Shown here: in pieces, positions 3,168-64,000 of the stretch
Layout: each line of letters opens with the position of its first letter
Numbering within the stretch: the stretch's first letter is position 1
Origin: Octopus bimaculoides
Lineage: Eukaryota
Assembly: GCF_001194135.2 (NCBI RefSeq)
Contig: NC_068982.1
Location: 105,542,843 to 105,606,842, forward strand
Direction of reading: 5' to 3'
Length of the DNA stretch: 64,000 nt
The notes under the pieces: generated by a model
What the model saw: only the letters and a program-made list of their open reading frames with translations
Told to the model about the DNA's origin: nothing
Databases searched by the model: none
Translations under genes and position numbers: made by a program

Positions 3168-3442
3168 TCATCATCATCATCATCATTATCGTTTAACGTC
3201 CGGCTTCCATGCTAGCATGGGTTGGACGATTTGACTGAGGACTGGCAAGCCAGAAGGTTGCACCAGGCTCCAATCTGATCTGGCAGAGTTTCTACAGCTA
3301 GATGCCCTTCCTAACGCTAACCACTCCAAGAGTGTAGTGGGTGCTTTTACGTGCCATCGGCATGAGGGCCAGTCACACGGTACTAGCAACGGCCATGCTC
3401 AAAAAGGTGTTTTTTACGTGCCACCTGCATGGGAGCCAGTCT
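3168..3442 (-). mobile_element. 5'-truncated RTE LINE 3' UTR fragment with (GAT)n tail
   Basis: Matches the 3' end of the RT-bearing RTE copy at 52330-53875. (CAT)n at the left end. Confidence 0.85.
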
Positions 3443-20762: not shown

Positions 20763-21002
20763 CGTCGTCGCCGTCGTTTAACGTCCGCTTTGACTGATTT
20801 GACTGAAGACTGGTGAAACCAGATGGCTACACCAGGCTCCAATCTGATTTGGCAGAGTTTCTACGGTTGGATGCCCTTCCTAACGCCAACCACTCAGAGA
20901 GTGTAGTGGGTGCTTTTACGTGTCACCCGCACGAAAGCCAGTCAGGCGGTACTGGCAATGGCCACGCTCAAGATGGTGTATTTTATGTGCCACCTGCACA
21001 AA
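20763..21002 (-). mobile_element. RTE 3' UTR fragment
   Basis: Same tail as 3168-3442. It accounts for the recurring MKPDGYTRLQSDLAEFL pseudo-ORF. Confidence 0.85.
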
Positions 21003-22831: not shown

Positions 22832-22871
<40 letters not shown>

Positions 22872-22881
<10 letters not shown>

Positions 22882-23692
22882 AGGGCATTACTATACAATA
22901 ACGCCTCACGCCATGAGGGACTCTAAGGTCAGACTACTATAAAAAGCACATTTTTACTGGATGTGAGGAAATGCAACTCTCAAAGCCAACCCCTTAAAAA
23001 CGGACTAAATTATAGATCATGATTTCGTAGTTATTGTAGTATTATACAACTTCTACTCGTCAGTATAATATGGTCAAGAAAAATAGAAATAAACAGTGAA
23101 TCAACATACCAAACGAACACCGTGTATCCAGCATAGCATATAGACGACTGTTCATCGCTATTTCCCTATGTAAGTGGCGGGAATTTTGAATTGCATCTCG
23201 GTAAATATGCCTCTTACTCAGAATAAATTCAGCACTGAATATATTCTGGTAATATATTTAAATTCAATAATAGGACGAATTCTTTTACAAGAATTTATCA
23301 AGTAGCTAGCNNNNNNNNNNNNNNNNNNNNNNNNNNNNNNNNNNNNNNNNNNNNNNNNNNNNNNNNNNNNNNNNNNNNNNNNNNNNNNNTTTATATTTAT
23401 ATAAGGGCATTACTATACAATAACACCTCACGCCATGAGGGACTCTAAGGTCAGACTACTATAAAAAGCACATTTTTACTGGATGTGAGGAAATGCAACT
23501 CTCAAAGCCAACCCCTTAGTAGTCTGACCTTAGAGTCCCTCATGGCGTGAGGCGTTATTGTATAGTAATGCCCTTATATAAATATAAATATATATTTCGG
23601 GAATAAATGATGGATTTTTTCCCTTATGAGGTTTTTTCACGCTAGCTACTTGATAAATTCTTGTAAAAGAATTCGTCCTATTATTGAATTTA
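22872..23692 (-). mobile_element. Retrozyme-like element A: ~494-bp head-to-tail unit (1.25 copies) plus inverted segment, next to (TA)n
   Basis: The unit start ataagggcattact occurs at 22879 and 23401. The segment 23517-23692 is an inverted copy spanning the unit junction. The unit contains a hammerhead at 23009-23069 and no credible ORF. Confidence 0.8.
23009..23069 (-). ncRNA. Type I hammerhead ribozyme in element A
   Basis: Minus strand reads ATTATA CTGACGA GTAG-aag-TTGTA-taatac-TACAA-taa-CTAC GAAA TCATGA TC^TATAAT. All core nucleotides are present, stem I is a perfect 6 bp, and stem III is the palindrome ATCATGAT. AUC cleavage falls between 23015 and 23014. Confidence 0.9.
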
Positions 23693-24151
23693 TATATATA
23701 TATATAGGACAAGCTTCTTTCAGCTTCTGCCTACCAGATCCACTCACAAGGCTTTGGTTGACCCAAGACACTTGCCCTAGATGCCACACAGTAGGACTGA
23801 ACCCAGAACCATGTGCAAGCTACTCACCACACACACAAATATTACTAAATAATGATTGTTACTGAGCAGAGCTATCATAACTGCATGTAAGAGTTAATGC
23901 TAATAACTAAGACTTTAATCCTGAAGTTCAAATTTCCAACAGTAATATTTCTTTTATAACTATTATAATATAAACAGGATTACAAAAATGAGTTAGTACA
24001 TTAAGAGCTGTAAAAGGTAGTAATCTATACATATAAATTTGACATGGGCAATTCTTTCTTGTCTTGGGATTCAGTCAAATGGCTGGGTGGAATTGCATGA
24101 AAAATTACACAGATGTGTAGAATGATCCAGTGGTGATGCTGGGCTTTGAAT

Positions 24152-24331
24152 TTTTCATAGCTCCCATGGTAACCAAGATAATCTACAATAATACTCTTGT
24201 GTTTATGAGAAAGGAAGGGGTGATAGATGAATAAGGAAGGAAGGGGTGATGTCATATTTTTTCATATCTCCCATGGTTACCGAGATAATCTACTATAATA
24301 AGACTCGAGAAAGGAAGGGGTGAAGTCATAC
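24152..24331. repeat. Imperfect direct duplication, ~105-bp period
   Basis: tttttcata.ctcccatggt.acc.agataatctac...gagaaaggaaggggtga occurs at ~24152 and ~24258. Confidence 0.8.
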
Positions 24332-30163: not shown

Positions 30164-30805
30164 TCATCATCATCGTTTAACGTCCGCTTTCCATGCTAGC
30201 ATGGGTTGGACGATTTGACTGAGGACTGGTGAACCGGAAGGCTGCACCAGGCTCCAATCTGATCTGGCAGAGTTTCTACAGCTGGATGCCTTTCCTAACG
30301 CCAACCACTCCGAGAGTGTAGTGGGTGGTTCTATGTGCCACCGACACGAGGGCCAGTCACACGGTACTGGCAATGGCCACACTCAAAATGGTGTTTTTTA
30401 CATGCCACCTGCACGGGAGCCAGTCCAGCGGCACTGGCAACAATGTTGCTCGAATGATTTTCTAACGTGCCAGAAAGGCAACGCTGGTAACGATCATGCT
30501 CAAATGGTGCTATTTATGTGCCACTAGCATGGAAGCCAGACAGCTGCTCTGGCAATGATCATGCTCCACTGGCACAGGTGCCGGTCATCGAATATGGTTC
30601 AGTAACGATTTTAATTTCACTTGCCCCAACAGGTCTTTGCAAGCAGAGTTTAGTGTCCAATGAAGGAGAGGTTGGCAAGGGTGCCAGTCGTTGAATTTGG
30701 TTTGATTTCGATTTCAATAATTCACTTGCCTCAACAGGTCTTCGCAAGCAGAGTTTAGTGTCCAATGAAGTAAAGATACAAATAAGTGAGCTGGCTACAC
30801 TTCTG
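30164..30805 (-). mobile_element. RTE 3' UTR fragment with internal tandem units
   Basis: (CAT)n tail, the shared RTE tail sequence, and a duplicated tttcacttgcc.caacaggtc...gtgtccaatgaag unit. Confidence 0.88.
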
Positions 30806-31985: not shown

Positions 31986-32345
31986 ATCATCATTGTTTAA
32001 CGTCCGCTTTCCATGCTAGCATGAGTTGGACAATTTGACTGAGGACTGGTGAAACCAGATGGCTACACCAGGCTCCAATCTGATTTGGCAGAGTTTCTAC
32101 AGCTGGATGCCCTTCTTAACGCCAACCACTCTGAGAGTGTAGTGGGTGCTTTTACGTGCCACCGGTACGAAGGCCAGTCAGGCAGTACTGGCAACGGCCA
32201 CGCTCAAAATGGTGTATTTTACGTGCCACCTGCACAGGAGCCAGTTCGGCGGCACTGGCAACGATCTCGCTCGAATGTCTTTATACATGCCATCTGGCAC
32301 AAGTGCCAGGAAGGCGATGCTGGGCACAGGTGCCATGACGATTTC
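31986..32345 (-). mobile_element. RTE 3' UTR fragment
   Basis: Same shared RTE tail sequence. Confidence 0.85.
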
Positions 32346-33894: not shown

Positions 33895-35345
33895 TTGCAG
33901 CACAGGAGCTAGTCCAGCGGCCCTGGCAATGACCTCACTCGAATGTTGTTTTTCATGTGCTACTAGTAACGATCATGCTCGAATGGTGGTTTTTACGTGC
34001 CACTGGTACGGGGGCCAGTCAGCGGCCCTGGCAATGATCATGCTCGAATGGGGCTTTTAGTGCTCCACTAGCATGGATGTCAGTCATGCGGTGCTGTCAT
34101 CGAATTTAATTTCGATTTCACTTGCCTCAACAGGTCTTCGCAAGCAGAATTTGGTGTCCAATGAAGGAAAGGTACGTCCAAGTGGGCTGGTTACACCACT
34201 GGCATAGGCCATGGGTTATGGTCTCACTTGGCTTGCCGGGTCTTCTCAAGCACAGCATATTTCCAAAGATCTCGGTCACTAGTTATTGCCTATGTTCGAA
34301 GGTTGAGCTTCACCACCTCATCCCAGGTCTTCCTGGGTTTACCTCTTCCACAGGTTCCCTCAGCCACTAGGGTGTGACACTTTTTCACACAGCTATCCTC
34401 ATCCATTCGCACCACATGACCATACTAGTGCAATCGTTTCTCTTGCACACCACAACTGGTGCTTCTTAGGTTCAACTTTTCTCTCAAAGTACTTACACTC
34501 TGTCAAGTATGCACACTGACATTACACAAAACCATCGGAGCATACTGGCTTCATTTCTTGCAAGCTTACGCATGTCCTTAGCAGTCATGGCCCATGTTTC
34601 ACTACCATGTAGCATGGCTGTTCGTACACATGCGTCACACAGTCTACCTTTTACTCTGAGCGAGAGACCCTTTGTCACCAGCAGAGGTAGGAGCCCTCTG
34701 AACTTTGCCCAGGTTATTCTTATTCTAGCAGCTACACTTTCAGAGCACCCAACCCCTGCTACTGACTTGGGTCACCTAGGTAACAGAAACTGTCAACTAC
34801 TTCTAGTTTTTCTCCCAGGAATGTGGCAGAAGTTGCTCTCTGCACATTTTCAGTCTTTAGTGCTCCTGAGCATCTGCCACATACAAAAACTATCTTCCCA
34901 GTTAGCGTTCCTTTGATATTGCTGCACCTCTTATGTGTCCATAGTGTACACTGGGTACATCTTATACAATTTCTACCTATGCCTTTTCTACAGATCGAGC
35001 AAGGCCATCTACCTGAAAGGATTTGTGGTTTGTCTGCCTTCCTACTTATTAGGACTTTGGTTTTAGCTAGGTTGACTCTAAGGCCCTTTGATTCTAATCC
35101 TTGTTTCCACATCTGAAACTTCTTGTCTAGTTCTGATAGTGACTCAGCAATTAGAGCAAGGTCATCAGCATAGAGGAGCTCCCAGGGGCATCCTATCTTG
35201 AAGTCCTCTGTTATTGCCTGGAGGACTATGATAAATAGGAGGAGGCTGAGGACCGAACCTTAGTGGATTCCTACCTCTAGCCGGAATTCTTCACTGTACT
35301 TGTTGCCAACCCTCACCTTACTGACAGCGTCCCTGTACATGGCTT
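33895..35345 (-). mobile_element. RTE-clade LINE fragment (RT C-terminal half, post-RT region, part of 3' UTR)
   Basis: Contains GIH.GS..GPQPPPIY/LYADDL region, GLRVNLAKTKVL, a C-rich WPCSICRKG..CTQC..WTHKRC segment and LHGSETW. Frameshifted. Confidence 0.93.
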
Positions 35346-35967
35346 GCAAAGCTCTCTATAAGCATATATATATATATATATANNNNNNNNNNNNNNNNNN
35401 NNNNNNNNNNNNNNNNNNNNNNNNNNNNNNNNNNNNNNNNNNNNNNNNNNNNNNNNNNNNNNNNNNNNNNNNNNNNNNNNNNNNNNNNNNNNNNNNNNNN
35501 NNNNNNNNNNNNNNNNNNNNNNNNNNNNNNNNNNNNNNNNNNNNNNNNNNNNNNNNNNNNNNNNNNNNNNNNNNNNNNNNNNNNNNNNNNNNNNNNNNNN
35601 NNNNNNNNNNNNNNNNNNNNNNNNNNNNNNNNNNNNNNNNNNNNNNNNNNNNNNNNNNNNNNNNNNNNNNNNNNNNNNNNNNNNNNNNNNNNNNNNNNNN
35701 NNNNNNNNNNNNNNNNNNNNNNNNNNNNNNNNNNNNNNNNNNNNNNNNNNNNNNNNNNNNNNNNNNNNNNNNNNNNNNNNNNNNNNNNNNNNNNNNNNNN
35801 NNNNNNNNNNNNNNNNNNNNNNNNNNNNNNNNNNNNNNNNNNNNNNNNNNNNNNNNNNNNNNNNNNNNNNNNNNNNNNNNNNNNNNNNNNTATATATATA
35901 TATATATATATATGCTTATTGAGAGCTGTGCAAGCCATGTACAGGGACATAAAATATGGCACCGTAT

Positions 35968-36410: not shown

Positions 36411-36662
36411 GCAATAAGAAAATGGAAGGGAATATGTGGTACTCATCATCTTGCAGACATTGTATTATATTAATTTACCTGTTTATTTTTCAACTAAGAG
36501 GACAATAAAAAACAATATACAAACACATATGACATATGTCACATGTGTTTGTATATTGTTTTTATTGTCCTCTTAGTTGAAAAATAATCAGGTAAATTGA
36601 CAGAATACAATCTGTGCAAGTTGATGAGTACCACATATTCCCCTCCATTTTCTTATTGCTAT
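36409..36662. mobile_element. ~250-bp hairpin MITE flanked by TA
   Basis: TAGCAATAAGAAAATGGA...TCCATTTTCTTATTGCTA. The arms are complementary almost to the centre near 36535. Confidence 0.85.
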
Positions 36663-36840: not shown

Positions 36841-37136
36841 ATGATCGTTGCCAGTGCCCCTGGACTGGCTCTTGTGCGGGTGGCACATAAAAGACACCAT
36901 TTCGAGCGTGGCCGTTGCCAGTACCGCCTGACTGGCCTTCGTGCGGGTGACACGTAAAAGCACCCACTACACTCTCTGAGTGGTTGGCGTTAGGAAAGGC
37001 ATCCAGCTGTAGAAACTCTGCCAAATTAGATTGGAGCCTGGTGTTGCCATCCAGTTTCACCAGTCCTCAGTCAAATCGTTCAACCCTTGCTAGCATGGAA
37101 AGCGGACGTTAAACGACGATGATGATGATGATGATA
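36841..37136 (+). mobile_element. RTE 3' UTR fragment, opposite orientation, (GAT)n tail
   Basis: Reverse complement of the 31986 and 30164 copies. Confidence 0.87.
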
Positions 37137-39548: not shown

Positions 39549-40324
39549 AATATAGTAGGGTTTGATTTAAAGGAGATTTTGCTGCTATTTATAGGCTTCC
39601 ACATAGACTGACTAAACATATGGAAATGATTCATATGGTACCTCATTCAGCCACAATCCTTAGTCTAGTATATTAACTAGACACTCTTTAATTGTTTAAA
39701 ATAACTAATGCTGCATATAGTGGCTATAAACACAACAAAATATATGTAATAAAATAGAAACAAATATATGCTCTATTATATTGACTAATTAATAAATATG
39801 AATGGGAGTTGACAATAACAATGGAAGGATACTGGTAAGAATTTCAGAAGGACGATCAATATTCATGAAAGACTTGGTATTATTTGTAGAAAGTGCCAGA
39901 TTTTTCCTTATTTTGGTTGTGCTCATTAAGTATTTAGTTAGTTTGTTGTTCTGGTATTGTTTTCCATGAGCTGTATGAATGATATTCCAACAATGAATAT
40001 TATACGAAGATGTGTTGAATAGTCCAAATCAGTGCTGATTGTACAGATACAAGATGTACTGGTTGGCAGTTGGTTTAACAATTAAGTGAAATCTAGATGT
40101 GGCTTGCCTCTGCCTGGTTCAAAAACAAACTGTACACTTCTCAAGCAAAAAGTGATTAATCATATTAGGTGCAGTATGGGCACTCAAATCTGTCAGAATT
40201 AGCAGTCAAATCTCCTTCAAACTACTCCCTACTAAGTTTAAAATCATTGAAAATGAAGGATATATAATATATTCTGTTTTTTACTGTTGTTAGAGAAGAG
40301 CTAAGTAATGCAGCTATTAAAGTT

Positions 40325-40396
40325 TTGGATGTAGCTCAGTGGTAGAGCGTTCGCTTTGCATGCGAACGGCCCCGGGTTCGATCCCTAGCATCTCCA
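40325..40396 (+). tRNA. trnA-TGC: tRNA-Ala(TGC), variant or recent pseudogene
   Basis: D arm GCTC/GAGC, anticodon arm TTCGC-TTTGCAT-GCGAA, GTTCGATC T loop, G3:U70 Ala identity pair, and a T5 terminator at 40404-40408. Positions 1-2 are TT and do not pair with CC. The T stem has a C-A mismatch. Confidence 0.85.
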
Positions 40397-40408
40397 GAAT
40401 ATCTTTTT

Positions 40409-40558
40409 GGCATTAAGAAGGGCATCCAGCTGTAGAAACTCTGCCAAATCAGATTGGAGCCTGGTGTAGCCGTCTGGTTCACCAGTCCTCAGTCAAATTG
40501 TCCAACCCATGCTAGCATGGAAAGTGGACGTTAAACGATGATGATAATGATGATGATG
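40409..40558 (+). mobile_element. RTE 3' terminal fragment directly downstream of the tRNA
   Basis: ggcattaagaagggcatccagc...ggacgttaaacgatgatgat. Confidence 0.85.
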
Positions 40559-43124
40559 AACAAGTATTTCCATATATTTATATATGGCTGGTGTTGTTTT
40601 GTGTATGATATATAGCTGTGGCTAAGTTGGAAGCTGTGGGTTATTGCGATATAGCAATGCACGAATGTCTCATCATTTAGAAATTGCAGTTGTACAATTC
40701 AGACCTTTTCCAGGAAGCAGAAGTGTAACTGAGAATGACAGAGCTTAGATATCCAATCACACATTTCTAGTGAAACTAGACGAAACATGTAAATGTATGG
40801 GAATAAAGCATAGGTGAACATGGAATAAGCTCTGCATTTTGTTGGGCATATGAGAAACTCATCATCATCATTTAACATCCATGTTCGATGCTGGCATGGG
40901 CTGGATGGTTTTGACAAGATCTAATGGCCTAAGGACTGCACTGTGCTCTCATGTCTGTTTTGGCACAGTTTTTATGGTTGGATGCTCTTCCTAATACCAA
41001 CCACTATACAATGCGTACCAGGTGCTTTTTTTCATGCAATCAGCACTAATGAGGTTGCCATGCAGTTTGCAAGACTATGAACCCTGATGGGGTAGCTTTA
41101 TATTAGAAAATGGGGGGGGGGGGGGTGAAAATAAGGGAGAAGGGGCCAGAGCAGAACAGGTTTCTAGCTGTATTTCACATACTCTAGTGAACCATTCAGA
41201 AGAGGTTGTTGATTTTAAATATTTAGTGATTTCGTATATAAAACGCCTCCGTTACTTAGTAGACAGTTTTCGACAAGTGAGTATGTAAAGCGTATTATTT
41301 CTGCATAGCGTCTGAGGTAACATGTAAATTTTATTATGCAAGTCTAAAAGTGTTTAGAGGAATTTTGTAGCGAGATGTAGTGAGGAGACAATGAAGTAGA
41401 TACTATAATACGACAAACTGATGGTTTAAAACTGATCAACAGCAATAACTTGGCCAACCTCAGAGGTCCTTAGGTTATGGTGCAGTCCATTCCTCCGAAG
41501 AGCTATCTATCTATCTTCCATAATCTACCAAAGACATCATTGCAGTCATGGTCGCGCCGTATTTACTTTTCAAGGGTAGTATATCTAGATGGTTGGGTGT
41601 GATTTGAGGGAGATTTTGGCAGCTGTTTCTAGTAGGTCGAGAGATAGAATGTCATCTCCACAAGTAGAAAAATTAACGAGAAAAACACGCCTGATGAGGA
41701 AGACATGCAAAGATATGACATCATTGAAGAACATCAGAATTGACGGCGTGATATATGAAAAATGCGACACAAACACATCGTTGTACTGCTACTGAAGAAG
41801 CTTCAGTTGCTCGACCAGCAAGAAATAGATCCAAATATACCCCTAAGTCACATCTCAATATTTTAAAGAAAAAGGGAAAGGCATATAGAAAAACGTAGTC
41901 CTAGATATACAAGGTAGGATGGTCATAGTTGGAGAGTTTTTGATCACAAATTTACTGAATCAAGGTCGACTTGGAACGAAACAACAATAACCAAATGACT
42001 CATAAGAAGTTTCAGGTAATTTATAATAGCTAATTCATTATTTAGAAACTGCCAGTCTGAGAGAACAGCGCCATTTTTATGTTTACGTAATGATACACAA
42101 ATATATTTATTTTGATGTACGTCCTTTAATGTTTAAATACGTTTGCTACAATTGTCAGATCGGAGTATATTTAATGCAATGAACAGAAAAGGGTTGTTTA
42201 GAAATCTTTTCTTTCAGCTATGAAAGTATGGATGGAAATATAGTTTTAAAAATGCTCCAGCAGCTACGTGTTTGGTAAAGTTTACAAACAATCAAGTATC
42301 GTTTACCACGAGTCTCCTTTCGCAAATCACAATGCTAAATAGTTGTGATCTTACAAAGCTGTGCAACGAGATTACGAAAGTATACAGAAACTGACATCTC
42401 CCATTCCATCAACAATCAACTAGATACTAAATGTAAAAACCACAAAGAATTTTTAGCATTAAACAATCTACTACAAGCAATTCGGTTAATATATTTATCT
42501 TCATCTTTTACTATTTGTAACCGAAATAACTGAGATAAATTATTTGTTTTCGAAAGAAAAACAACTTGTAGCAGTTATATTTCTCACTCAGATGTTCTAC
42601 CACAGAACAACAATGACTTAATAAACCTCAGATAGTATTTTTCTTTTTTTTTACTTTTCAATATTCGAATAAATTATCTCGTTTCTTTTCATTCTTATAG
42701 CATATAACAAACAATATTGCTGAATAGTGTGATAATTCATTTGAGTGGATTTATAAAACAATTAAAAGTACAGTCTGTTACCAAGAAGGGTGAGCGATTT
42801 TAGTGTTTTTATAACTTTCATTCATTCCTGTACAATTTAGGAGGAAACTAGGAAATTTTTTGATTGGAATTAAATACGATCAATTATAATAAAGGAATTG
42901 ATCAACTGATCAATAATAATAAAGGAAAAGAAACAATCAATATAATGGGAAGAGTTACTAAGCAAAACAAATGAAGATCATCTGATTAGCAATTATTGTT
43001 TAACAGAAAACAAAACAAAATGCGCTGAGTTTTGAATGGATATAAAACAATTATAAACATTTAAATGAAGGACAAAACTATAAACCGTAACAGGTTAAGA
43101 GAAAATGACTGGAGCAGTTCCTAC

Positions 43125-43560
43125 CTGATCCAAATTTGTTCTTGTAGAGTTCTCCATTAGTGTGTTTACATCTGACAGGCAAAATCATGCAATGAACTGA
43201 TTCGTCCCATTGATACTTGAACCCTTTAATATCTTTATCAAGAGGAGTTGGTTGGGTACTTAATGGAGGTTTCAATTCAGTCTCGTCAGCAACACTTAAG
43301 GTTTGATCATGAATCACGATATGTGTGGTCTTGATACCTGCTTCCTGAAGCTGCTCTGCAGAGAGTATACCTTGAGATGTTGCAACAAACACTTGATCTG
43401 CTGGAATGGTACCGTTGTTAGTGACCACGGATGGGGTGACAGTACCAGCACCACTGTCCGTACCTGGATGGTCGGAGGCAGTCTGCTGTGGGTCCTCCTC
43501 CTCCGTGAAGGCGGGATCGTCACCATTCGGTAACGAGTCGGAAATATCGACTTCAGACAT
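43125..43560 (-). CDS. DEAF1: DEAF1 coding exon 1 (acidic N-terminus and start of SAND)
   Basis: ATG at 43560. Ends LPVRCKHTNGELYKNKFGSG with donor G|gtagga in phase 1, matching exon 2. The seven exons total 1380 nt, i.e. 459 aa plus stop. Confidence 0.95.
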
Positions 43561-48176: not shown

Positions 48177-49620
48177 AATGCCACGATGAAAGGTTGCTCA
48201 AAGAGAATGAATGGGAGAAAGAGAGTCTGCCAAATGTCGACCCAACAGAGGGACCAGCTATCCAAGTTGACAGTGCCATGGTAGATAAAGCAATTAAGAG
48301 TATGAAGACAGGGAAAGCCCCCGGCCCATCGGGGATCACTGCAGAGATGCTCAAAATATCTGGCAGTGTCGGCTATAGCCTAGTCACTCATATAGTTAAC
48401 CAGGTGATACATGGAGTCATACACAATGACTGGTGTAGCAGCAAAGGTAACTGGTGACGCTTTAGATACAAATAATTACAGAGGTCTCCAGTTGTTGGGT
48501 CAGGTAATGAAGGTCACGGAGAGGGTCATAGCCCAACTAATTAGGGAGAGAGTCAGTTTAGATGAGATGCAGTTTGGGTTCGTGCCAGGGAAAAGCACCA
48601 CTGATGCTATATTTCTGGTAAGACAGCTGCAGGAGAAATACCTAGCCAAAGATAAACCTCTGTACCTGGCTTTCGTTGACATGGAGAAAGCCTTTGACAG
48701 GGTCCCCCGCTCCCTTATCTGGTGGTCAATGAGGAAACTAGGGATAAATGAATGGTTAGTGAGAGCTGTGCAAGCCATGTACAGGGGCGCTATCAGTAAG
48801 GTGAGGGTTGGCAACGAGTACTATGAAGAATTCCGGGTAGGAGTCCACCACGGTTCAGTCCTCAGCTCCCTCCTATTTATCATAGTTCTCCAGGCAATAA
48901 CAGAGGAATTCAANNNNNNNNNNNNNNNNNNNNNNNNNNNNNNNNNGATGCTCCTGGGAGCTCCTCTATGCTGATGACCTTGCGCTAATTGCTGAGTCAC
49001 TATCAGAACTAGAGAAGTTTCAGGTGTGGAAGCAAGGACTAGAATCGAAGGGCCTTAGAGTCAACCTAGCTAAAACCAAAGTCCTAATAAGTAGGGAGGT
49101 AGACAAAACACAAACCCTTTCAGGTAGATGACTTTTACCACATTCCAGGGAGAAAAACTAGAAGTAGTTGATAGCTTCCGTTACCTAGGTGACCAAGTCT
49201 GTAGCAGAGGAGGGTGCGCTGAAAGTGTAGCTGCTAGAATAAGAATGGCCCGGACAAAGTTCAGAGAGCTCTTACCTCTGCTGGTGACAAAGGGCCTCTC
49301 ACTCAGAGTAAAAGGCAGACTGTATGACGCATGTGTACGAACAGCCATGCTACATGGTAGTGAAACATGGGCCATGACTGCTGAGGACATGCGTAAGCTT
49401 GCAAAAAATGAAGCCAGTATGCTCTGCTGGATGTGTAATGTCAGTGTGTATACACAACAGAGTGTAAGCACCTTGAGAGAAAAGTTGGACCTAAGAAACA
49501 TCAATTGTGGTGTGCAAAAGAGACGATTGCGCTGGTATGGTCATGTGGCAAGAATGGATCAGGATAGCTGTGTGAAAAAGTGCCACACCCTAGTGGTTGA
49601 GGGAACCTGTGGAAGAGGTT
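48177..49620 (+). mobile_element. RTE-clade LINE reverse transcriptase fragment with internal deletion
   Basis: GKAPGPSGI, QFGFVPGKSTTDAI, YLAFVDMEKAFDRV, GVHHGSVLS, LYADDL and LHGSETW motifs. Frameshifts are present and the C-rich segment is deleted near 49130. Confidence 0.95.
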
Positions 49621-50039
49621 GTGGACTGGTATTGTAGATAAAGCCTTAAAATCTAAAAAACAAGCCTGAAAAGATTAAAGGCAGAGCAAAGAGCAGTATC
49701 AGTTGGAAAATAGATGGGTGCAATGTGTAGCCAAGAGGGAAGCTGTAAGAGGTTTGTCAATATTTGTGATAAGAGGTTTAGAGGATAAAGTGTTCCACTG
49801 CAAAGTAGTGTGTTGGTGTGAAATGAGATGTAGTGAGGGGAAAATGTGCATGCAATCATAGCAGTGCACTGACATAAGTGGCATAGAAATGTTATTGTAA
49901 GGAAGTTGCTGAATGAAGAGAAAGTGAGAGACTGGGTCTTTTCTAAGTATACCCAGTTGCTATTGAAATTAACTGCTTTATGGTTGAAATTACCATTAAA
50001 GATGTATGAGATACTGAAAATATTCTGCTGGTATTTGTG

Positions 50040-50350
50040 CCAGTAGCACGTGAAAAAACATTTGAGCGAAGTCGTTGCCAGTGCCGCTGGACTGTCTCCC
50101 GTGCAGGTGGCACGTAAAATGTACCATTTGAGCCTGGCCGTTGCCAGTACTACCTGACTGGCTCTCATGCCGGTGGCACGTAAAAGCACCCACTACACTC
50201 TCAGAGTGGTTGATGTTAGGAAGGGCATCCAGGTGTAGAAACTCTGCCAGATCAGATTGGAGCCTGGTGCAGCCATCTAGTTCGCCAGTCCTCAGTTAAA
50301 TTGTCCAACCCATGCTAGCATGGAAAGTGGACCTTAAACGATGGTGATAA
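50040..50350 (+). mobile_element. RTE 3' UTR fragment
   Basis: Shared RTE tail, plus orientation. Confidence 0.85.
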
Positions 50351-52329: not shown

Positions 52330-53875
52330 TATAATCATCATCATCATCATTTAACGTCCGTTTTCCATGCTAGCATGGGTTGGACGATTTGACTGAGAAC
52401 TGGTGAACCACATGGCTACACCAGGCTCCAATCTGATTTGGCAGAGTTTCTACAGCTGGATGCCCTTCCTAACGCCAACCACTCCGAGAGTGTAGTGGGT
52501 GCTTTTACGTGCCGCTGGCACGAAGGCCAGTCAGGAGGTACTGGCAAAGGCCATGCTCAAAATGGTGTTTTTTATGTGCTACCTGCACAGGAGCCAGTCC
52601 AGTGGCACTGGCAACGACCTCGCTCGAATATCTTTTCACGTGCCAGGAAGGCGACGCTGGTAACGGTCACACTCAAATGGTGCTATTTACGTGCCACTGG
52701 CACAGAAGCCAGACAGCTGCTCTGGCAATGATCACACTCGGACAGTGCTCTTAGCGCTCCACTGGTACNNNNNNNNNNGACAGCTGCTCTGGCAATGATC
52801 ACACTCGGACAGTGCTCTTAGCGCTCCACTGGTACAGGTGCCATCACGATTTCGCTTTCACTTGCCCCAACAGGTCTTCCCAAGCCGAGTTTAGTGTTCA
52901 ATGAAGGAGACGTTGGCACGGGTGCCAGTCGTTGAATTTAGTTCAATTTCGATTTCACTTGCCTCAACTGGTCTTTGCAAGCCGAGTTTAGTGTCCAATG
53001 AAGGAAAGGTACGCATAAGTGGGCTGGTAGAGGCCGCGGATTATGGTCTCACTTGGCTTGCCGGGTCTTCTCACGCACAGTATATTTCCAAAGATCTCGG
53101 TCACAAGTCACGCCTCGGTGAGGCCTAATGTTCGTAGGTCGTGCTTAACCACCTCATCCCAGGTCTTTCTGGGTCTACCTCTTCCACAGGTTCCCTCAAC
53201 TGCTAGGGTGTGGCACTTTTTCACACAGCCATCCTCATCCATTCTTGCCACACGACCATACCAGCGCAATCGTCTCTCTTGTACACCACAACTCATGCTT
53301 CTTAGGTTCAACTTCTCTCTCAAGGTACTTACACTCTGTTGAATATGCACACTGACATTACTCATCCATCGGAGAATACTGGCTTCATTCCTTGCGAGCT
53401 TACGCATGTCCTCAGCAGTCACGGCCCATGTTTCACTACCATGTAGCATGGTTGTTCGTACACATGCGTCATACAGTCTGCCTTTTACTCTGAGTGAGAG
53501 GGCTTTTGTCACCAGCAGAGGTAAGAGTTCTCTGAACTTTGCCTGAGCCATTCTTATTTTAGTAGCTACACTTTCAGCACACTTTCCTCCACTACTATCT
53601 TGGTCACCTAGACAGCGGAAACCATCAACTACGTCTAGTTTTTCTCCTTGGAATGTGGCAGAAGTTGTTTTCTGCACATTTACAGTGTTTATTCCTCCTG
53701 AACATCTGCCACATACAAAAACTAACTTCCTAGTTAACCTTCCTTTGATATTGCTGCACCTCTTATGTGTCCATAGCTTACACTGGGAACATCTTATAGA
53801 GTTTCTACCTATGCCTTTTCTCCAGATCGAGCAGGGCCATCTACCTGAAAGGGTTTGTGTTTTGTCTAAAAATAG
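52330..53875 (-). mobile_element. RTE LINE 3' portion with complete 3' UTR and (GAT)n tail
   Basis: ORF 53108-53677 ends GRGRPRKTWDEVVKHDLRTLGL. It is followed by a tandemly repetitive 3' UTR that explains all the short dispersed copies. Confidence 0.95.
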
Positions 53876-54906
53876 CTAAGTTTATGACATGTCTAATGAA
53901 ATGCTGGTTCCTTATCCCATAACTGTTGTTTTGTTGAAGGTGACACAGTACCAGTGTGTCTACTATTTGTCTGAAATTGCAGTATATATTTTAGCCTAAT
54001 CTTTTAGTCTTGCTTCTTTTTCTCATGAAGTATCTACTTATTTCACTTTTACATTGTATCTTATTGATAGTTTGAATCTTTTTCTGCAAGTGATGTTACT
54101 TTGAGAAGTTTCTGGTGTTTCTTTATCCTTTATATTCAACTCCTCTGCTCTATAGAGGGTCAATATTTCAGATTTATTGAAACCATTGCCTCATAGATGA
54201 GTAACTGTACAACATAATTCAACTTAATCTAAATATTAGTTTTGAACCTGTAGGAGGAAAATTCTTTTGTATATGAAACCATTGTTCCTTTGCTCATCAT
54301 TCTCTTGCCATCACTCAACCCTATTACTATTTGAATTTATCAGACCAGCAAACATGTAGCTGCCAGTGTTGCATCTTGTATTACTTGCTCTCAATACTTT
54401 CACTCTTACATCACTCCACTTTCACACTGTTTCCCCACAATATCTCTACTTTTACTCTAGCTCCACTGTCATTGCTCTCTTCTATTGGCCACACTTTTGG
54501 TCATGCTACCTCCAAATGAAGGTCCTTTAGTTTTGTTCAAGACATGAAAGCCTCTCTGATGTTGGTACCATAATAAAAATGCACTGACTGGTTGGTACTA
54601 GGAAAGGCATCCCGCCATAGAAATCATACCAAAATTGGGACGTATGAACAAGATATGATCCTTTGACTGACTTAGGAGGGCATAACTTTGAACAAAAACT
54701 GATTAGTACTGTGGCAATCTGTACAATTTATGCTGTAAAATAATGATTAGCCTTTCCCCTTGTTGAAGAAATGTAGAACATGTGAGCATGAAGCAGAAAA
54801 TAATATTAATTTCAGTCTTGGATATCTGAAAATAAGTTTAATAGTCTAAATGGTATTTTTTTTTTTTTTTTAATTTTTATTTAAAAATTTTTTTTTTTTG
54901 CTGCAG

Positions 54907-55018
54907 GCTCTTGGAGCAGGGAAACTTGGAGAATATGACAATGAACTAATTGAAGCCCCAGAAGATGAAGAAGACAATGATCTCCGAAATGATGAAACTT
55001 TTGGACTTTCTGATGATG
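54907..55018 (+). CDS. PATL1: PAT1 homologue coding exon 2
   Basis: Poly-T...gctgcag acceptor and gtaatt donor. EEDNDLRNDETFG resembles the PAT1 N-terminal DDX6-binding (D..NDDTFG) motif. Confidence 0.8.
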
Positions 55019-55437
55019 GTAATTTTAAAAAATTTATTTCGTTGTTGACACACTCAAACCTATGTTATCTCAATATATTTTACCTTTATGCTTTTTCCTA
55101 CAAATTTTGCCTGATTTATTATTAGATTTTAAGTTCTTATAACACTGAGTGAAGTGAGCCAAAGAGGAACCTAAAATTGTTGCTTGAATATCTTGAGACA
55201 GCAGCCAAATCATATCCTGCTGTTTTAAGATATGAAGACGGTATAATGTAGTTTTAATTAAACATTCTTGAGGAAAAGAAATAGGTGGTCACAACTTGGA
55301 CAGCTTTTAATAGGTTATTCAGTTGGGACCAACTTGGTACTGGGTTTTCTATGCATGGTACATAGCAATCTTAGAGTGAAATATTTCATTTAATAAAAAA
55401 AAAAATTTGTTTCAATATATAACCTTATAAAATATAT

Positions 55438-56029: not shown

Positions 56030-56208
56030 CCTAAGCACCCACTACACTCTCAGAGTGGTTGGCGTTAGGAAGGGCATCCAGCTGTAGAAACTCTGCCAAA
56101 TCAGATTGGAGCCTGGTGTAGCCATCTGGTTTCACCAGTACTCAGTCAAATCGTTCAACCCATGCTAGCATGGAAAGCGGACGTTAAACGATGATGATGA
56201 TGATGATA
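56030..56208 (+). mobile_element. RTE 3' terminal fragment
   Basis: Shared tail plus (GAT)n. An oppositely oriented variant lies at ~55615-55960. Confidence 0.85.
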
Positions 56209-56921
56209 ATAAAATAATATATGCATATATACACACATACATATATGGGTACAAGATATCAAAAAAATGTGAACAAAAGGAGAAACGAAAACATAAAAAA
56301 CAAAAGCATGAAAAACGAACATTTTTTCGAACAACGAAAGAAACAACTACAGAAACGAGATAGGCAATATGAAGAACCTTCCCTTCATCAGTTGTCCCGT
56401 TTTATCTACTCTGCATTTTGAAGGTAGGGACAAGACGAGACTTTGTTAAAACAATGCTTCCCGCAGAGCAAATTAAATAAAATTTGAGATTTTTTGCAGA
56501 GGGTTAAAGTGTTAAAAAAAACAGGACAGTAAGAAGAAAACAGTTAAAACAAACAGTGAGGGCTGTTAAGCCATAACGAGGTGAAGTGGTGAATGCTGGA
56601 AAAATGAGCTTTGAGAAGAGACAAGCAAAAGCACGTCTTTGTGAAGGAAGTGGAAGAAAGATAGATAGCCATTGGTTTCGTGTGAGCAATGAGAGTCAAG
56701 GAGGAAGAGTGAGAGAGAGAGGGGGAACAGTGAAGGGGAGAGAAAAATAGAAAGGAAGAAGAACAAGAGAGGGAGATAGGTTGTAGAGTGCACATCAGAA
56801 TTAGGATAAAACTTACTTGGAAATGGATGCATGACGTTTGATCATATAATAATAAAATGTGCATATATATACACATACATGTACATGTCTACATATATGT
56901 GTGTGTGTGTTTGTATCTATG

Positions 56922-56974
<53 letters not shown>

Positions 56975-57011
56975 AGAAATGTTAAATAAAGGTGTTATTC
57001 AAATCTTTATA

Positions 57012-57098
57012 CTTCCAACATGTTTCGAAGAAAACATTGGTGTTATTCCAGAGGGAATAAAATGATGTAAAACAATGCTGTCTTCTCATCAGGGGAAA
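57012..57098 (-). ncRNA. Penelope-type minimal type I hammerhead, partly decayed
   Basis: Minus strand reads TTCCC CTGATGA GAAGACAGCATTG...CAATGTTTTCTTC GAAA CATG TT^GGAAG. Stem II is a 13-bp imperfect helix with an inner TTATTCC/GGAATAA hairpin. Stem III is the palindrome ACATGT. Stem I is imperfect. The tail runs into (TA)n. Confidence 0.65.
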
Positions 57099-57207
57099 AA
57101 AAAAGAGAAACAAAGTACATCAATAAGCCATTTTAACCAAATGTGATAACTGCATATGTTTTTTCCATGTTATTTGTGCATATTGAAAAAATGCACATGC
57201 ATTTATA

Positions 57208-57793
57208 TATATATATTTATATAAGGGCATTACTACAGAATAATGCCACACACTAGACTTCCATAATAAACAAATTTTTACCAAATGCGAGGAAAAGCAA
57301 CTCTTAAAAAAAACGAACCTTTTAAAAACAAACTCCACTATATATCGAACAATTTCACGATTATTAGAATATTATCTAACTTTCGATCATCAGTATAGTA
57401 TGGTACAAATATATAAAAATAAACAAAATCCTCAACTTACCAAAACAAACACCTTATGTATCCGACATAGCAAACAGAATAATGTTTATCCTTATACATC
57501 TATGTAAAAAGCAGGAATTTTTTTAATTGCTCTCGGTACACATGTTTAAAACGGAATAAAATTCAGCACTGAATATATTCTGGATATATATTTAATTAAT
57601 TCAATAAGATAAAATCTTTTACAAGAATTTTATCAAGAAGCTAGCGTGAAAAAACTCCTAAGGGAAAAATAAACTATCATTTTTTATTCCCAAGAATATA
57701 TTTATTTATTTATATTTATATAAGGGCATTACTACAGAATAATGCCAAACACTAGACTTTTTTTCATGCTAGCTTCTTGATAAAATTCTTGTA
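57208..57793 (-). mobile_element. Retrozyme-like element B: 499-bp head-to-tail unit plus short inversion
   Basis: ataagggcattact occurs at 57221 and 57720. 57759-57793 is an inverted copy of ~57619-57654. Collinear with element A, sharing blocks such as aattcagcactgaatatattctgg and ttttacaagaattt.atcaag.agctagc. Confidence 0.8.
57337..57399 (-). ncRNA. Type I hammerhead ribozyme in element B
   Basis: Minus strand reads ACTATA CTGATGA TCGA-aag-TTAGA-taatat-TCTAA-taa-TCGT GAAA TTGTTCGA TA^TATAGT. Intact core, 6-bp stem I and AUA cleavage site. There is a T-T mismatch at the first stem II pair. Confidence 0.85.
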
Positions 57794-57832
57794 TACATAC
57801 ATATATACATACTTACATATATTTACATACGT

Positions 57833-57876
<44 letters not shown>

Positions 57877-57986
57877 TGATTGGATAGAAAAAGAAATTAA
57901 GATATTGATATGAACTCTTATGTCTTGTTTTATTGCTAGGTAGATTAAAAATAAAACTTTAATAAATATTGTTTTTCATTTACCAG

Positions 57987-58150
57987 CATATGAATGGCAG
58001 GAAGACCATAATCCATTACAGGCAGGTTTTCCGCTTAATAGCAGACCAATTGAAAATCAAGGTCTTGAAAAATCATCTAAGTTGTCTCAGGAGATCACCC
58101 CCAAAGCATTCCTAGATGAGAATTTCGAGGATGTCTTCCGAATACAGGAG
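57987..58150 (+). CDS. PATL1: PAT1 homologue coding exon 3
   Basis: tttaccag acceptor and gtattt donor, 164 nt, phase 1/0. Begins (A)YEWQEDH, continuing the TFG...W..H motif of PAT1 N-termini. Confidence 0.8.
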
Positions 58151-59383
58151 GTATTTATTTTCATGTGAAGCTATTTCTCTTTATATTTGACTTTGTTTAC
58201 TTATGCATAATCTTCTTTAATCATAGCCAAACTGTACTAAGGATACTGAGTTTGTCCAACAAAGGAATATTGTCTTGATTCTGCAATGTCACACATCTAT
58301 TTTAGCAGTGACATTATTATCTCTTATATGGTGTTAAAATAAAGCATTTCATTTCATTAACAATCCAGTCTTTAGTTCAACATTTATTGTTTCTTTGCAG
58401 ACTTACTGTATATTGTGAAAATGTGTAGTTTTATGTTTTTAGATTCATGATTGTATACATAAAAATAATCTTTAATTGAAAAACATGTTAGGGTTGGTAA
58501 TATGAAGAGCCTCTGATTAAATTAAATAATTATTAAATTAATTCCTATCAAATCCATTCTTGTATGGAAATGTGGGCATTCGTTAAGGATATATAAGATT
58601 AATGATTTCCCTAATAATAATTTTGCAGTGAAAATTTCCAGAACCTGCATGTTTGACAACAGAAGAATAATGATTTTTTAAACCTAGTTAAGTATTCCAC
58701 TTTAGTGCCATTAGAATTATACATGCAGATTCTAAAGGCATCTATAGAAATCTGGAAATTATCATAAGTGGTTACATTACCTGACAATATAGTGCATATG
58801 ACTTATTTTGTATTAATCTCATATATAATTAAATTGTTATATAAACTTATATGTTGAACAAAGTTTTTCTCTTGTCAATTTTTCATTCTGATAACAATAT
58901 TTAATTTGTGCAATGGCTTATTCAGTATAAGAATCATTGTATTGGGTAGGGTGTGTCTGTGTATAGCTATTATCTCTTTAAATTGTTAATGTTCTGCTTT
59001 ACTTTTCAGTATAGAACTTAAATCAGTTGACTGATCTGTTATGGTTTCGACTGAAATGTTAGAGCTTACGTTTGATTGTTCTTTCTATGTATTGAGCAAT
59101 AGGAATGCCCTATTTTCAAAATACCATGAGATATTTAGTTATGATCCTTTATGTTCTCAGTTTAATCCCACCTGAGGTCAACATTGCTTTTCATCCTTTC
59201 AGGGTCAATAAAACGAACAGCTAAATACTTAGGTTGATTTAATCAGTTATATCTTTCTCCAAAAAATGTGTATCCCTTCTCACAATCTTAAAAATCAATA
59301 TTAAAAAATGGTGAGATTCATTACTGTCAGCATCAAAAAAGAAAACTCTGTCTAAACCAAGGCTTTTTTATTTTCTATTTCAG

Positions 59384-62163: not shown

Positions 62164-62489
62164 GTAAGCAGATTGTAGGTATCTTCAGTTAAGGCAGGCT
62201 AATGCTGTTACTCTTAGGCAGTCTGTTATCCAAGAATTACAACTCTTAAACAAGAAAATTTTATAAAAAGAAAAATCCTCCTAAATCTGGATATGTATCT
62301 TTTCATAGCATAATTTTAACATTCACATACTGAGGTCATTACATGTTTTCTGGAATGTTGAACATCCAGTGATTGTCATTGAATGTATTCTAATAAGACA
62401 GCTATTCAGTTCTTGGTCTAACATCACCCCTGGTTCTATGATATAAACTTCTTGTTCAAAGTGAATTAAATTAAAACCAAACAATTTCA

Positions 62490-62825
62490 TTGAAAACTGT
62501 ACAGGTCAGTAAGGTGAGAGTTAACTATGAGTACAAGGAAGAATTTAGTGTACAGGCAGGTGTTCATCAAGGCTCAGTTCTCAGTCCCCTCCTGTTCATC
62601 ATTGTCCTCCAGGCCATAACAGGAATTCAAATCTGGCAGTTTCTGGGAGCTACTATATGCTGATGATCTTGCCCTCATAGCAGATTCTATATCAGGGCTA
62701 GAAAAGAAATTTCAGGTGTGGAAGCAAAACCTGGAATCATAAGATTAACTTGGCAAAGACCAACGTCTTAGTAAGCAAGAAAACAGACAAGACCTTATCC
62801 CCTTTCAGGTAAGTGGTTCTGCTCA
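62490..62825 (+). mobile_element. Degenerate RTE RT fragment
   Basis: GVHQGSVLSPLLFIIVLQAI and LYADDL motifs. Confidence 0.85.
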
Positions 62826-63662
62826 TAGATCTAATTGAGCAGGCCTACAGGGAATACAACTGTGACCATTGCATATCTTTGTGCATCTAGGACTACATTA
62901 TTTAATGTGTCCATCTTGTAAGATAGTAAAATGTCATTTGTAGGAATCTGATTATTACTTGTAGGTCAAGTGATTGAATAGGGGGGGGGGGGTCATCTTA
63001 CCAAAAATTATCTTGCTGAATTAGACAATGGCTGATATGTCTGATATACCATTTAATGGTTACTGGCTATAGACACATTCCAGCTCTGATTGTTTTATAC
63101 TGATTCATATAAGAATGGTTAGCAATAGCCAAGAATGTTATTGTATAATTATGAAAGGATAGTGTTCAGAGTTAATTTGAAGATTTTTTTTTTGTCATCT
63201 GCTGCATTTCTTTGCTGATTAAGTTTTAAAATCTCGGTATGTTGAACATGTTATACAGGTCTGGTATTTTGTTTAACCTTTTCTTTACTTTGTTGCTAAC
63301 CAAAGTACACGTTTTATGTCTTTCAGTAAAATTCTAAAATAATCATGAATTTAGACTCGTTTCATAACTCTTATTAATCAGCATAGTGATTTTTGGAACA
63401 CAGTTTAACAAAAGGTCCTTAAGCAAATCAATTTCATAGTTTTTGTCTCAAAGTGAATCTAATTACAGGTAAATACAATGAAATATAGAATTAAGTTTTG
63501 TATAAACACCAGCATAGAAAATAAGTTATTAGCTAATATTCAATGAATATACAACAAAATTTTAATATAGAAGAATTGTGCAAATTACTGGATTATCTAT
63601 CATTTGAATTTAATGTACATAAGGACACGTGTACCATACAAGTAAAACAATGAAATAGTGGA

Positions 63663-63742
63663 ATTTCGTGTTGCAACTCGAGGTATTTCGTGTTGCAACT
63701 CGAGGTATTTCGTGTTGCAACTCGAGGTATTTCGTGTTGCAA
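63663..63742. repeat. 22-bp minisatellite, ~3.6 perfect copies
   Basis: Unit atttcgtgttgcaactcgaggt. Confidence 0.95.
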
Positions 63743-63744
63743 GA

Positions 63745-64000
63745 CAGTGTAGGAGAGAGAATAGTGATGTTGTAGGAGAGAAATGTGTTCGCATGGATGA
63801 TGGTACGCTTGCATTAAATGAGGATGCAAAGAAAGAGGTCTGGAGATGCCACTACGATAGATTGCTTAATAAAGAGAATGAATGGGAGAAAGAGAGCCTG
63901 CCTTATGTCGACCCAATAGAGGGACCAGCTATCCGAGTTGATAGTACCAGGGTAGATAAAGCAATTAAGAGTATGAAGACCGGGAAAGCCCCCGGCCCAT
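63745..64000 (+). mobile_element. RTE LINE fragment running off the window
   Basis: Nearly identical to 48197-48330 (ENEWEKESLP...GKAPGP). Confidence 0.9.

Follow-up and report, generated by a model that had tools for sequence, protein, structure and literature searches.

The 64,000-nt stretch of Octopus bimaculoides DNA analysed here (RefSeq assembly GCF_001194135.2, contig NC_068982.1, positions 105,542,843 to 105,606,842 of the forward strand; referred to as the window) contains two loci of one repeat family, element A at 22874-23699 and element B at 57216-57793, separated by 34 kb. In both elements a complete type-I hammerhead lies on the minus strand, the sense strand of the repeat, and both are probably insertions of a small retroelement of the kind known in animals as 'retrozymes', mobilised by a Penelope-like element (PLE). 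The window was read at 56400-58800 and 21900-24300; blastn comparisons of each element against the entire window, and an nhmmer profile, then yielded exactly these two loci. Their parts are the following:

22834-22873, no strand: (TA)20 flank at the 3′ end of A, read from the sequence.
22874-23310, minus strand: unit of element A up to an assembly gap, from sequence reading, alignment and nhmmer.
23311-23389, no strand: assembly gap inside A, 79 N.
23392-23518, minus strand: partial second copy of A, 5′-truncated, starting 19 nt 3′ of the hammerhead site; equals 22870-22996 with 1/127 differences.
23517-23699, plus strand: inverted copy of A across the unit end-to-start junction (model 454-519 plus 2-130), from blastn and nhmmer.
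23691-23706, no strand: (TA)8 on the other side of A, read from the sequence.
57204-57215, no strand: (TA)6 tract adjoining the 3′ end of B, read from the sequence.
57216-57714, minus strand (sense = minus): full unit of element B, 499 nt, defined by the TTTATATAAGGGC period and an nhmmer match (model 2-519 at 57713-57216).
57715-57759, minus strand: partial second copy of B, 5′-truncated (3′-terminal 45-60 nt), sense-upstream of the full unit; 57700-57759 equals 57201-57260 with 3/60 differences (nhmmer model 480-519).
57755-57793, plus strand: inverted piece of B, ~39 nt from unit positions 57-95, located at the insertion's 5′ edge; matches 57620-57654 in reverse complement (1/35 differences) and gives an nhmmer match on the plus strand.

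The units of A and B share 75% identity over 475 ungapped columns. The period of B, 499 nt, is the spacing of the two TTTATATAAGGGC starts, and the unit of A measures 495 nt when it is completed from its own inverted copy, which supplies 58 nt masked by the N gap. The coordinates, unit lengths (~494 versus 499 bp) and tandem-plus-inversion structure beside TA repeats that an earlier note on this DNA had given are all correct at both loci, as judged by blastn and nhmmer. Each locus contains 1.1-1.3 units and a single hammerhead, and the unit end-to-start junction recurs at three junctions without an open reading frame (ORF) in between. The gap in A probably hides no further units, because one junction requires 58 nt, not far from its 79 N. 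A satellite array or a local duplication is rejected on the basis of this anatomy. It is likewise hard to credit that the loci are small pieces of hammerhead satellite DNA, as found in newts, resized by unequal crossing-over: animal hammerhead repeats were indeed first described as satellites, and the gap inside A could in principle conceal more units, but unequal crossing-over accounts for neither the inversions nor the shared target of two loci which lie 34 kb apart, are 25% diverged, hold little more than one unit each and combine an inverted 5′-truncated piece with a 3′ end in (TA)n, while the gap matches roughly the 58 nt of a single junction. A longer microsatellite, (TA)21 at 56926-56967, is located ~250 bp upstream of B, with unique AT-rich sequence (56970-57200) in between; the original microsatellite target of B may have been split by a further insertion.

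The hammerhead motifs and the predicted cleavage site of B are located as follows:

23009-23069, minus strand: type-I hammerhead motif of A, 15/15 stem pairs canonical, helix III loop the palindrome UCAUGA; from descriptor, pattern and pair table.
57336-57400, minus strand: type-I hammerhead motif of B, from a descriptor match, a loose-pattern match at 57353-57393 and the pair table.
57342-57343, minus strand: predicted self-cleavage site of B, between A17 (57343) and U1.1 (57342), placed by hammerhead numbering.

Read along the sense strand, with a slash at the predicted cleavage position, the hammerhead of A (23069 to 23009) is AUUAUA-CUGACGA-GUAG-AA-GUUGUA-UAAUAC-UACAAU-AA-CUAC-GAAA-UCAUGA-UC/UAUAAU, and that of B (57400 to 57336) is (U)ACUAUA-CUGAUGA-UCGA-AA-GUUAGA-UAAUAU-UCUAAU-AA-UCGU-GAAA-UUGUUCGA-UA/UAUAGU(G). 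By hammerhead numbering, A would be cleaved between 23015 (C17) and 23014. All stems, loops, cores and sites quoted in the earlier note are present on the minus strand. Both motifs contain the core C3-U4-G5-A6-N7-G8-A9...G12-A13-A14, an A15.1-U16.1 pair and a residue other than G at H17, and the unpaired core differs between A and B only at N7 (C/U) and H17 (C/A), both of which are free positions. Three helices can be formed, of which helix I, composed nearly entirely of A-U pairs, is open and comprises 6-7 bp, helix II comprises 4+6 bp and a hexaloop, and helix III consists of one pair in A and one to two pairs in B, plus a loop. In both copies helix I continues into an internal loop, with a distal pairing that differs between A and B. 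Beyond its first 4 bp, helix II contains a conserved AA/AA internal loop, a conserved closing G.U pair, five more pairs and the hexaloop. The shared internal loop had been described as aag/taa; its conservation stands, and the better fold is AA/AA closed by the conserved G.U. The strings TCGA and TCGT of lower stem II in B, in turn, are not fully complementary: pair 10.1/11.1, at the base of helix II next to the core, is a U.U mismatch. A role of the AA/AA loop in a tertiary contact between helices I and II is plausible, given that this loop, at a distance of 4 bp from the core, takes up the usual place of loop 2.

A generic descriptor of the motif, requiring CUGANGA next to a helix I of 5 bp or more, pairing at three or more of the first four helix II positions, GAAA, 4-20 nt, a U and a non-G, and then the other arm of helix I, matches both strands of the window (128 kb) exactly twice, at the sites in A and B. 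Shuffled sequences (200 dinucleotide-preserving shuffles) give 0.01 sites per window, by which a chance motif is ruled out. The loose pattern CTGANGA(8-38)GAAA is uninformative by itself, with 7 matches versus 5.3 expected. Rfam scans of the window and of the local segments reveal no second ribozyme of opposite polarity, and the matches to miRNA families at E<=10 were rejected as TA/CA microsatellites and palindromes that score far under the thresholds.

The differences between A and B in the stems are strongly patterned. Among the 15 pairs scored (six in helix I, four in lower and five in upper helix II), eight are identical and six show compensatory double changes, while single-sided changes are absent; one pair is broken, G10.1-C11.1 of A having become U.U in B by changes on both sides. 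The compensatory changes are U-A to C-G in helix I, U-A to C-G, A-U to G-C and G-C to A-U in lower helix II, and G-C to A-U and U-A to G-C in upper helix II. As background, every other helix of 4 bp or more that unit A can form (421 in total) was traced through the alignment into B; there, compensatory double changes affect 2.7% of the pairs and single-sided changes 36%, and the binomial probability of at least 6/15 compensatory pairs is 1.6e-6. When, as a pair-counting control, the 3′ partners are slid by 1-3 columns, 0-1 two-sided pair changes are counted instead of 6. RNAalifold, run on the two monomers without a hammerhead model, finds helix I as well as the lower and upper parts of helix II. 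The stem differences are thus compensatory to an extent well beyond background, as the earlier note had proposed; its further statement that covariation extends across the whole ribozyme fold holds for helices I and II and is limited to them, with the 10.1/11.1 pair broken in B.

Since the compensatory changes adjoin one another, they may go back to fewer than six independent events, perhaps a handful. The contiguous blocks (UAG to CGA and GU to AG, each with its mirror) could also represent few arm-to-arm conversions, in which case the hairpins and their mirrored changes would stem from DNA-level template switching within inverted repeats and the hammerhead would have evolved without catalytic selection. 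The stem positions, 14/30 (47%) of which differ between A and B compared with an element-wide 25%, would fit such an origin, as would the lack of an Rfam match and the unremarkable folding energy of the motif. Template switching nevertheless appears very unlikely as the explanation, as it leaves unexplained the intact 11-nt unpaired catalytic core, in which N7 and H17 are the sole changed positions, the compensated helix I pair, with arms 62 nt apart, the correct NUH site, and the palindromic helix III that is typical of metazoan hammerheads. Moreover, the full descriptor, with its expectation of 0.01 per window, is found at the homologous place in A and B.

Comparison of the segments that were duplicated upon insertion gives an impression of the relative ages. 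Within locus A these segments show 3/265 differences (1.1%) and within locus B 4/95 (4.2%), as compared with 25% between A and B, so that most of the A-B divergence predates the insertions. On these sequence distances, two source lineages that each kept the fold are a fair inference, and B, the duplicates of which differ more, is the older insertion of the two.

Helix III determines what such motifs may achieve by themselves. In A, a lone A15.1-U16.1 pair closes the palindrome UCAUGA, and in B the corresponding pair closes the near-palindrome UUGUUCGA. As monomers, the helix III segments have no predicted stability (0.0 kcal/mol), whereas as homodimers they are predicted to form 8 bp with -8.6 kcal/mol in A and to reach -6.4 kcal/mol in B. 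In the typical metazoan type-I design, helix I has 6 bp, helix II 4 bp and helix III 1-2 bp capped by a small palindromic loop; two such copies lying close together are active as a double hammerhead, and poor activity is expected of a lone motif with such a helix III (PMC4209133, PMC7229834). The minimal palindromic helix III of A and B points in the same way to dimeric, double-hammerhead action. Neither A nor B, however, is a tandem with at least two hammerheads, and a transcript of either locus would be expected to be cut at most once, and poorly. As each locus holds one hammerhead, neither is able to release unit-length RNA, and A and B most likely represent dead ends, 'monomer' insertions that do not serve as sources of circular RNA. 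Of the replicating subfamilies under structural selection (at least two) that had been postulated, two fold-keeping source lineages are supported as a fair inference.

Conservation is not confined to the hammerhead. Identical runs of 25, 20, 17 and 16 nt are shared by A and B, with permutation P values of 0.012, 0.002, 0.0004 and <0.0002, respectively. Two of the blocks are located in B as follows:

57216-57235, minus strand: 3′-terminal conserved block UAGUAAUGCCCUUAUAUAAA, adjoining the (TA)n target; 20-nt run (P=0.002), present at every unit end at both loci.
57559-57583, minus strand: longest A-B identical block CCAGAAUAUAUUCAGUGCUGAAUUU; 25-nt run (P=0.012), containing a 5-bp hairpin that is part of the consensus fold.

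The conserved non-ribozyme blocks pointed out in the earlier note are consequently real, their runs being longer than the permutations predict, and the block UAGUAAUGCCCUUAUAUAAA at the 3′ end is added to them as a fourth; the functions that the note suggested for such blocks, as tertiary contacts or as recognition sites of a reverse transcriptase or ligase, are conjectural. This block forms the 3′ arm of a conserved hairpin together with a TA-rich tail which touches the target (TA)n. The units are low in GC (33% in A, 26% in B) and contain only short stop-free frames, the longest ORF spanning at most 87 codons; the type-I hammerhead thus resides in a short, non-coding, low-GC unit. Folding of the full monomers as circles, a check that had been proposed, predicts sense-strand structures far more stable than those of shuffled sequences, with a minimum free energy of -131.4 kcal/mol (z -6.2) for A and -113.1 kcal/mol (z -3.95) for B. 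In these predictions 67-70% of the bases of the sense circles are paired, and the sense circles are more stable than the antisense strands. Outside the hammerhead, the consensus structure comprises 103 pairs, 9 of which are compensatory versus 0-3 in slid controls; conserved structure in this part is only suggestive, because it is derived from the same two sequences.

The organisation of the insertions provides the second main line of evidence. In the sense direction both loci show the same order: an inverted 5′-truncated piece, a 5′-truncated partial unit, the full unit and (TA)n. A lies between (TA)20 and (TA)8, and B between (TA)6 and a TACA/TA/CA-rich tract, which forms the right flank from 57794 onwards. 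Hallmarks of PLE insertions are partial tandems (pseudo-LTRs, i.e., pseudo-long terminal repeats, pLTRs), an inverted 5′-truncated copy at the 5′ end and an extra 'tail' of 30-40 bp; the insertions are strongly biased to microsatellites, including (TA)n, and canonical clades carry hammerheads in their pLTRs (PMC8557442). Both loci display the partial tandem with the inverted 5′-truncated copy, and both insertions (n=2) lie in (TA)n without a clear target-site duplication. Tandem-plus-inversion beside (TA)n, which the earlier note had not recognised as such, is thus the published insertion signature of PLEs and names the likely mobilising machinery. PLEs are present in octopus genomes (PMC13282606) and were proposed as mobilisers of metazoan retrozymes by Cervera and de la Pena (PMC7229834). 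A 2026 preprint regards animal retrozymes as non-autonomous PLE derivatives on the basis of vertebrate pLTR similarity, other animals not having been examined (10.64898/2026.07.22.740005). The insertion anatomy described here forms an independent line of evidence for the retrozyme-PLE link, in a mollusc. The element itself is non-autonomous at best, because no ORF of more than 87 codons is present in the unit.

PLE insertions are mostly 5′-truncated and carry the hammerhead in the pLTR (PMC8557442; discussion of 10.64898/2026.07.22.740005), and the insertion anatomy of A and B is PLE-like. A and B might accordingly be terminal parts, or pseudo-LTR remnants, of 5′-truncated autonomous PLEs, the coding body of which is located elsewhere in the genome. 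We regard this as improbable, since a truncated autonomous element would show its coding body upstream of the terminal part, and not its own 3′ end, whereas the unit end-to-start junction occurs with a 495-499 nt period, and without an ORF, at three junctions in loci that are 25% diverged.

The assembly of this part of the genome contains five gaps of variable size, 990 N in total (136-495, 23311-23389, 35383-35890, 48914-48946 and 52769-52778). Two of the five lie in or beside TA-rich repeats, one of them inside A, which fits the published remark that PLE-type insertions break short-read assemblies.

Taken together, A and B are probably dispersed insertions of an AT-rich, non-coding and non-autonomous type-I hammerhead retroelement of ~495-499 nt, i.e., a PLE-mobilised animal non-LTR 'retrozyme'. 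The DNA itself shows the motif and its compensatory pairing, as well as the blocks that are conserved and the anatomy of the insertions. Several observations weigh against this assignment. The covariation is based on two full copies, and the compensatory changes are contiguous and mirrored. The hammerhead segments alone are thermodynamically unremarkable (z -1.1 and -0.8), and Rfam hammerhead families give no match at gathering score or at E<=10, neither in the window nor in local scans of 141 nt; the lack of an Rfam match probably reflects a helix II extended by 22 nt and the minimal helix III. There is a single hammerhead per locus, and that of B includes the mismatched 10.1/11.1 pair. The unit of 495-499 nt exceeds the 170-400 nt first described for metazoan retrozymes, although the size range of 51-972 bp in the 2026 survey would include it (10.64898/2026.07.22.740005). 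Finally, a PLE ORF, with reverse transcriptase (RT) and GIY-YIG domains, is not found in those ORFs of the window that were tested; the RT fragments it contains look LINE-like (long interspersed nuclear element) and match RVT_1 only.

RNA cleavage, the action of hammerheads as dimers, circularisation, the involvement of a PLE enzyme and the priming are inferred, and the presumed course is as follows. Source copies in tandem would be transcribed into multimeric RNAs, in which the hammerheads of neighbouring units would pair via their palindromic helix III, and the resulting active double hammerheads would liberate unit-length RNA. The monomers may be circularised by a host RNA ligase. A PLE reverse transcriptase/GIY-YIG endonuclease would nick a (TA)n microsatellite, the nicked DNA would prime on the TA-rich tract of the RNA beside the conserved 3′ hairpin, and more than one unit length would be copied from a circular or uncleaved multimeric template. 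A second priming event or template switch on the other strand would then give rise to the inverted 5′-truncated piece.

The junctions themselves can be compared with this scheme. Both direct copies have their 3′ boundary in the same TA-rich tract, and the copied stretch runs once through the intact hammerhead site and stops before reaching it again, the distance left being 19 nt in A and 83 nt in B. TA-rich or target-like sequence is found at the outer ends of the inverted pieces too. This suggests priming by microhomology between nicked (TA)n and TA-rich tracts of circular or uncleaved multimeric RNA. 'Twin priming' is known for the L1 element and serves as a model for a second priming on the other strand that would create the inversion. 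As a tentative and rather speculative extension, the two loci might record microhomology-primed 'twin priming' on a retrozyme template, with the helix II loop replacing loop 2 and the 3′ hairpin acting as RT recognition element. If true, they would constitute direct genomic evidence, in a cephalopod, of a PLE enzyme copying hammerhead RNA, either circular or multimeric.

Comparison with known systems places A and B close to the metazoan non-LTR retrozymes. Like these (PMC7229834; 10.64898/2026.07.22.740005), they are AT-rich non-coding repeats of a few hundred nucleotides with one type-I hammerhead per unit and a highly self-paired predicted RNA; the occurrence of several diverged families in one genome and PLEs as the proposed mobilisers are further common traits. 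Dispersed 'monomer' copies, including intronic ones, are also shared, and vertebrate 'monomer' derivatives have been reported (10.64898/2026.07.22.740005). Unlike metazoan retrozymes, A and B do not form multi-unit arrays, and their unit is 495-499 nt long instead of ~170-400 nt (PMC7229834). Their helix II, unlike that of the canonical retrozyme motifs, has an AA/AA loop and a second 6-bp stem at the place of loop 2. No example of a cephalopod hammerhead retrozyme was found in the literature searched.

With PLE pseudo-LTR hammerheads and insertions (PMC4209133, PMC8557442) the two loci share the partial tandem, the inverted 5′-truncated copy and the (TA)n target, and B in addition an extra piece of 30-40 nt. 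Their minimal palindromic helix III, longer-than-usual helix II and extensive between-family covariation also resemble PLE hammerheads (PMC4209133). In contrast to PLEs, they have no RT/GIY-YIG ORF, and the repeating unit is the entire 0.5-kb element. Helix I is canonical with 6 bp, unlike that of min-HHRs (4-5 bp). A single-pair helix III with a palindromic loop, and activity expected only as a double hammerhead, are found in HHR_Amex1 and HHR_Amex2 of the newt/axolotl satellite 2 as well, and axolotl HHR_Amex2, which cleaves weakly as a monomer, shares with B a U.U mismatch at the base of helix II (PMC7229834). The amphibian units differ from A and B in their length of 330-350 nt, their very long arrays, a short helix II with loop 2, and conserved contacts between loops 1 and 2. 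Plant LTR retrozymes (PMC4918200) are likewise non-autonomous, and their hammerheads cut the RNA into unit-length pieces that are then circularised, steps that for A and B are conjectural. Unlike A and B, the plant elements contain type-III hammerheads in LTRs of ~350 bp, a primer binding site and a polypurine tract, and they show 4-bp target duplications, a GC content of >55% and mobilisation by Gypsy elements (PMC4918200).

Covarying hammerhead families within a single animal genome have already been described (PMC4209133), and the present family adds to the known animal retrozymes without being a new kind of system. Distinctive are the extended helix II, the 0.5-kb unit and the legible PLE-type junctions in an invertebrate. 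Hammerhead retroelements are among the few sites in animal genomes where selection on catalytic RNA is visible, and the mobilisation of retrozymes has so far been argued from co-occurrence with, and sequence similarity to, PLEs, mostly in vertebrates. A and B show, in one family, a fold kept by compensatory change between diverged lineages and the scars of PLE-type insertion. They support the retrozyme-PLE partnership by independent evidence and supply concrete sequences for cleavage and circular-RNA tests.

Element B is flanked by two candidate exons of a host gene on the opposite strand:

54906-55024, plus strand: upstream host-gene exon with AG/GT boundaries and an open frame, splice phase compatible with 57975-58150.
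57975-58150, plus strand: downstream host-gene exon, ~180 bp from B, with an open frame and AG/GT boundaries.

The exons, separated by an interval of ~2.95 kb, can be joined as ...ETFGLSDD-A-YEWQEDH.... According to this prediction B is intronic and antisense to the host gene, and since it lies antisense in an intron, the host pre-mRNA would carry the inactive complement of the ribozyme. The earlier note took the gene for a PAT1 homologue. Its acidic N-terminal motif 'EDEED..NDETFG..W' resembles PATL1/Pat1 N-termini, which is no more than a lead. The intronic antisense position stands; the PAT1 identity is not confirmed, as the concatenated candidate exons have no homologue in the protein collection, no Pfam family and no relative in the PDB.

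Further copies of the element were sought in other collections. Exact-pattern scans with the 25-nt conserved block, and likewise a degenerate hammerhead pattern, gave no matches in metagenome, prokaryotic-genome and viral contigs, collections that are essentially without cephalopod DNA; the concatenated stop-free frames of the element gave none in the protein collection. Homologues of an RT ORF of the window lie on contigs of ~1 kb, too sparse a basis for recovering more genomic sequence.

The window also contains an abundant interspersed repeat with the conserved open frame KPDGYTRLQSDLAEFLQLDALPNANHSESVVGAFTCH..., present in ~12 copies per 64 kb on both strands and often located beside TA/CA microsatellites. 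Ten of the copies are:

3247-3441, 8150-8299, 20813-21013, 30231-30446 and 32049-32267, both strands across the family: first five KPDGYTRLQSDLAEFLQLDALPNANHSESVVGAFTCH repeat copies.
36842-37060, 40403-40480, 50128-50277, 52405-52617 and 56034-56135, both strands across the family: next five KPDGYTRLQSDLAEFLQLDALPNANHSESVVGAFTCH repeat copies.

It is probably the dominant SINE-like (short interspersed nuclear element) family of the genome. The copy at 40403-40480 adjoins a tRNA-Ala(UGC) call at 40324-40397 on the plus strand (Rfam, 47.6 bits, and ARAGORN), which may be a real tRNA gene or the head of a tRNA-derived SINE. Fragments of one LINE-type family, with Pfam RVT_1 and a PHD-like finger in the C-terminal part, are located at 48194-49637 (plus), 53108-53677 (minus) and 34759-35112 (minus), and more fragments of this family at 62475-62660 and 63646-63999 (plus). 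None of these fragments resembles a Penelope-like RT/GIY-YIG ORF; the closest named relative of the LINE-type RT fragment is an Octopus bimaculoides protein with 65% identity. A near-perfect AT-rich hairpin of 120 nt at 36474-36596, scored by plant miRNA models with 67 bits against a threshold of 99, is probably a palindrome or inverted repeat resembling a miniature inverted-repeat transposable element and not a miRNA. At the end of an open segment of 160 codons (43078-43560, minus strand) a SAND domain begins (Pfam PF01342, E 9e-6), and the segment is likely to be an exon of a second host gene on that strand.

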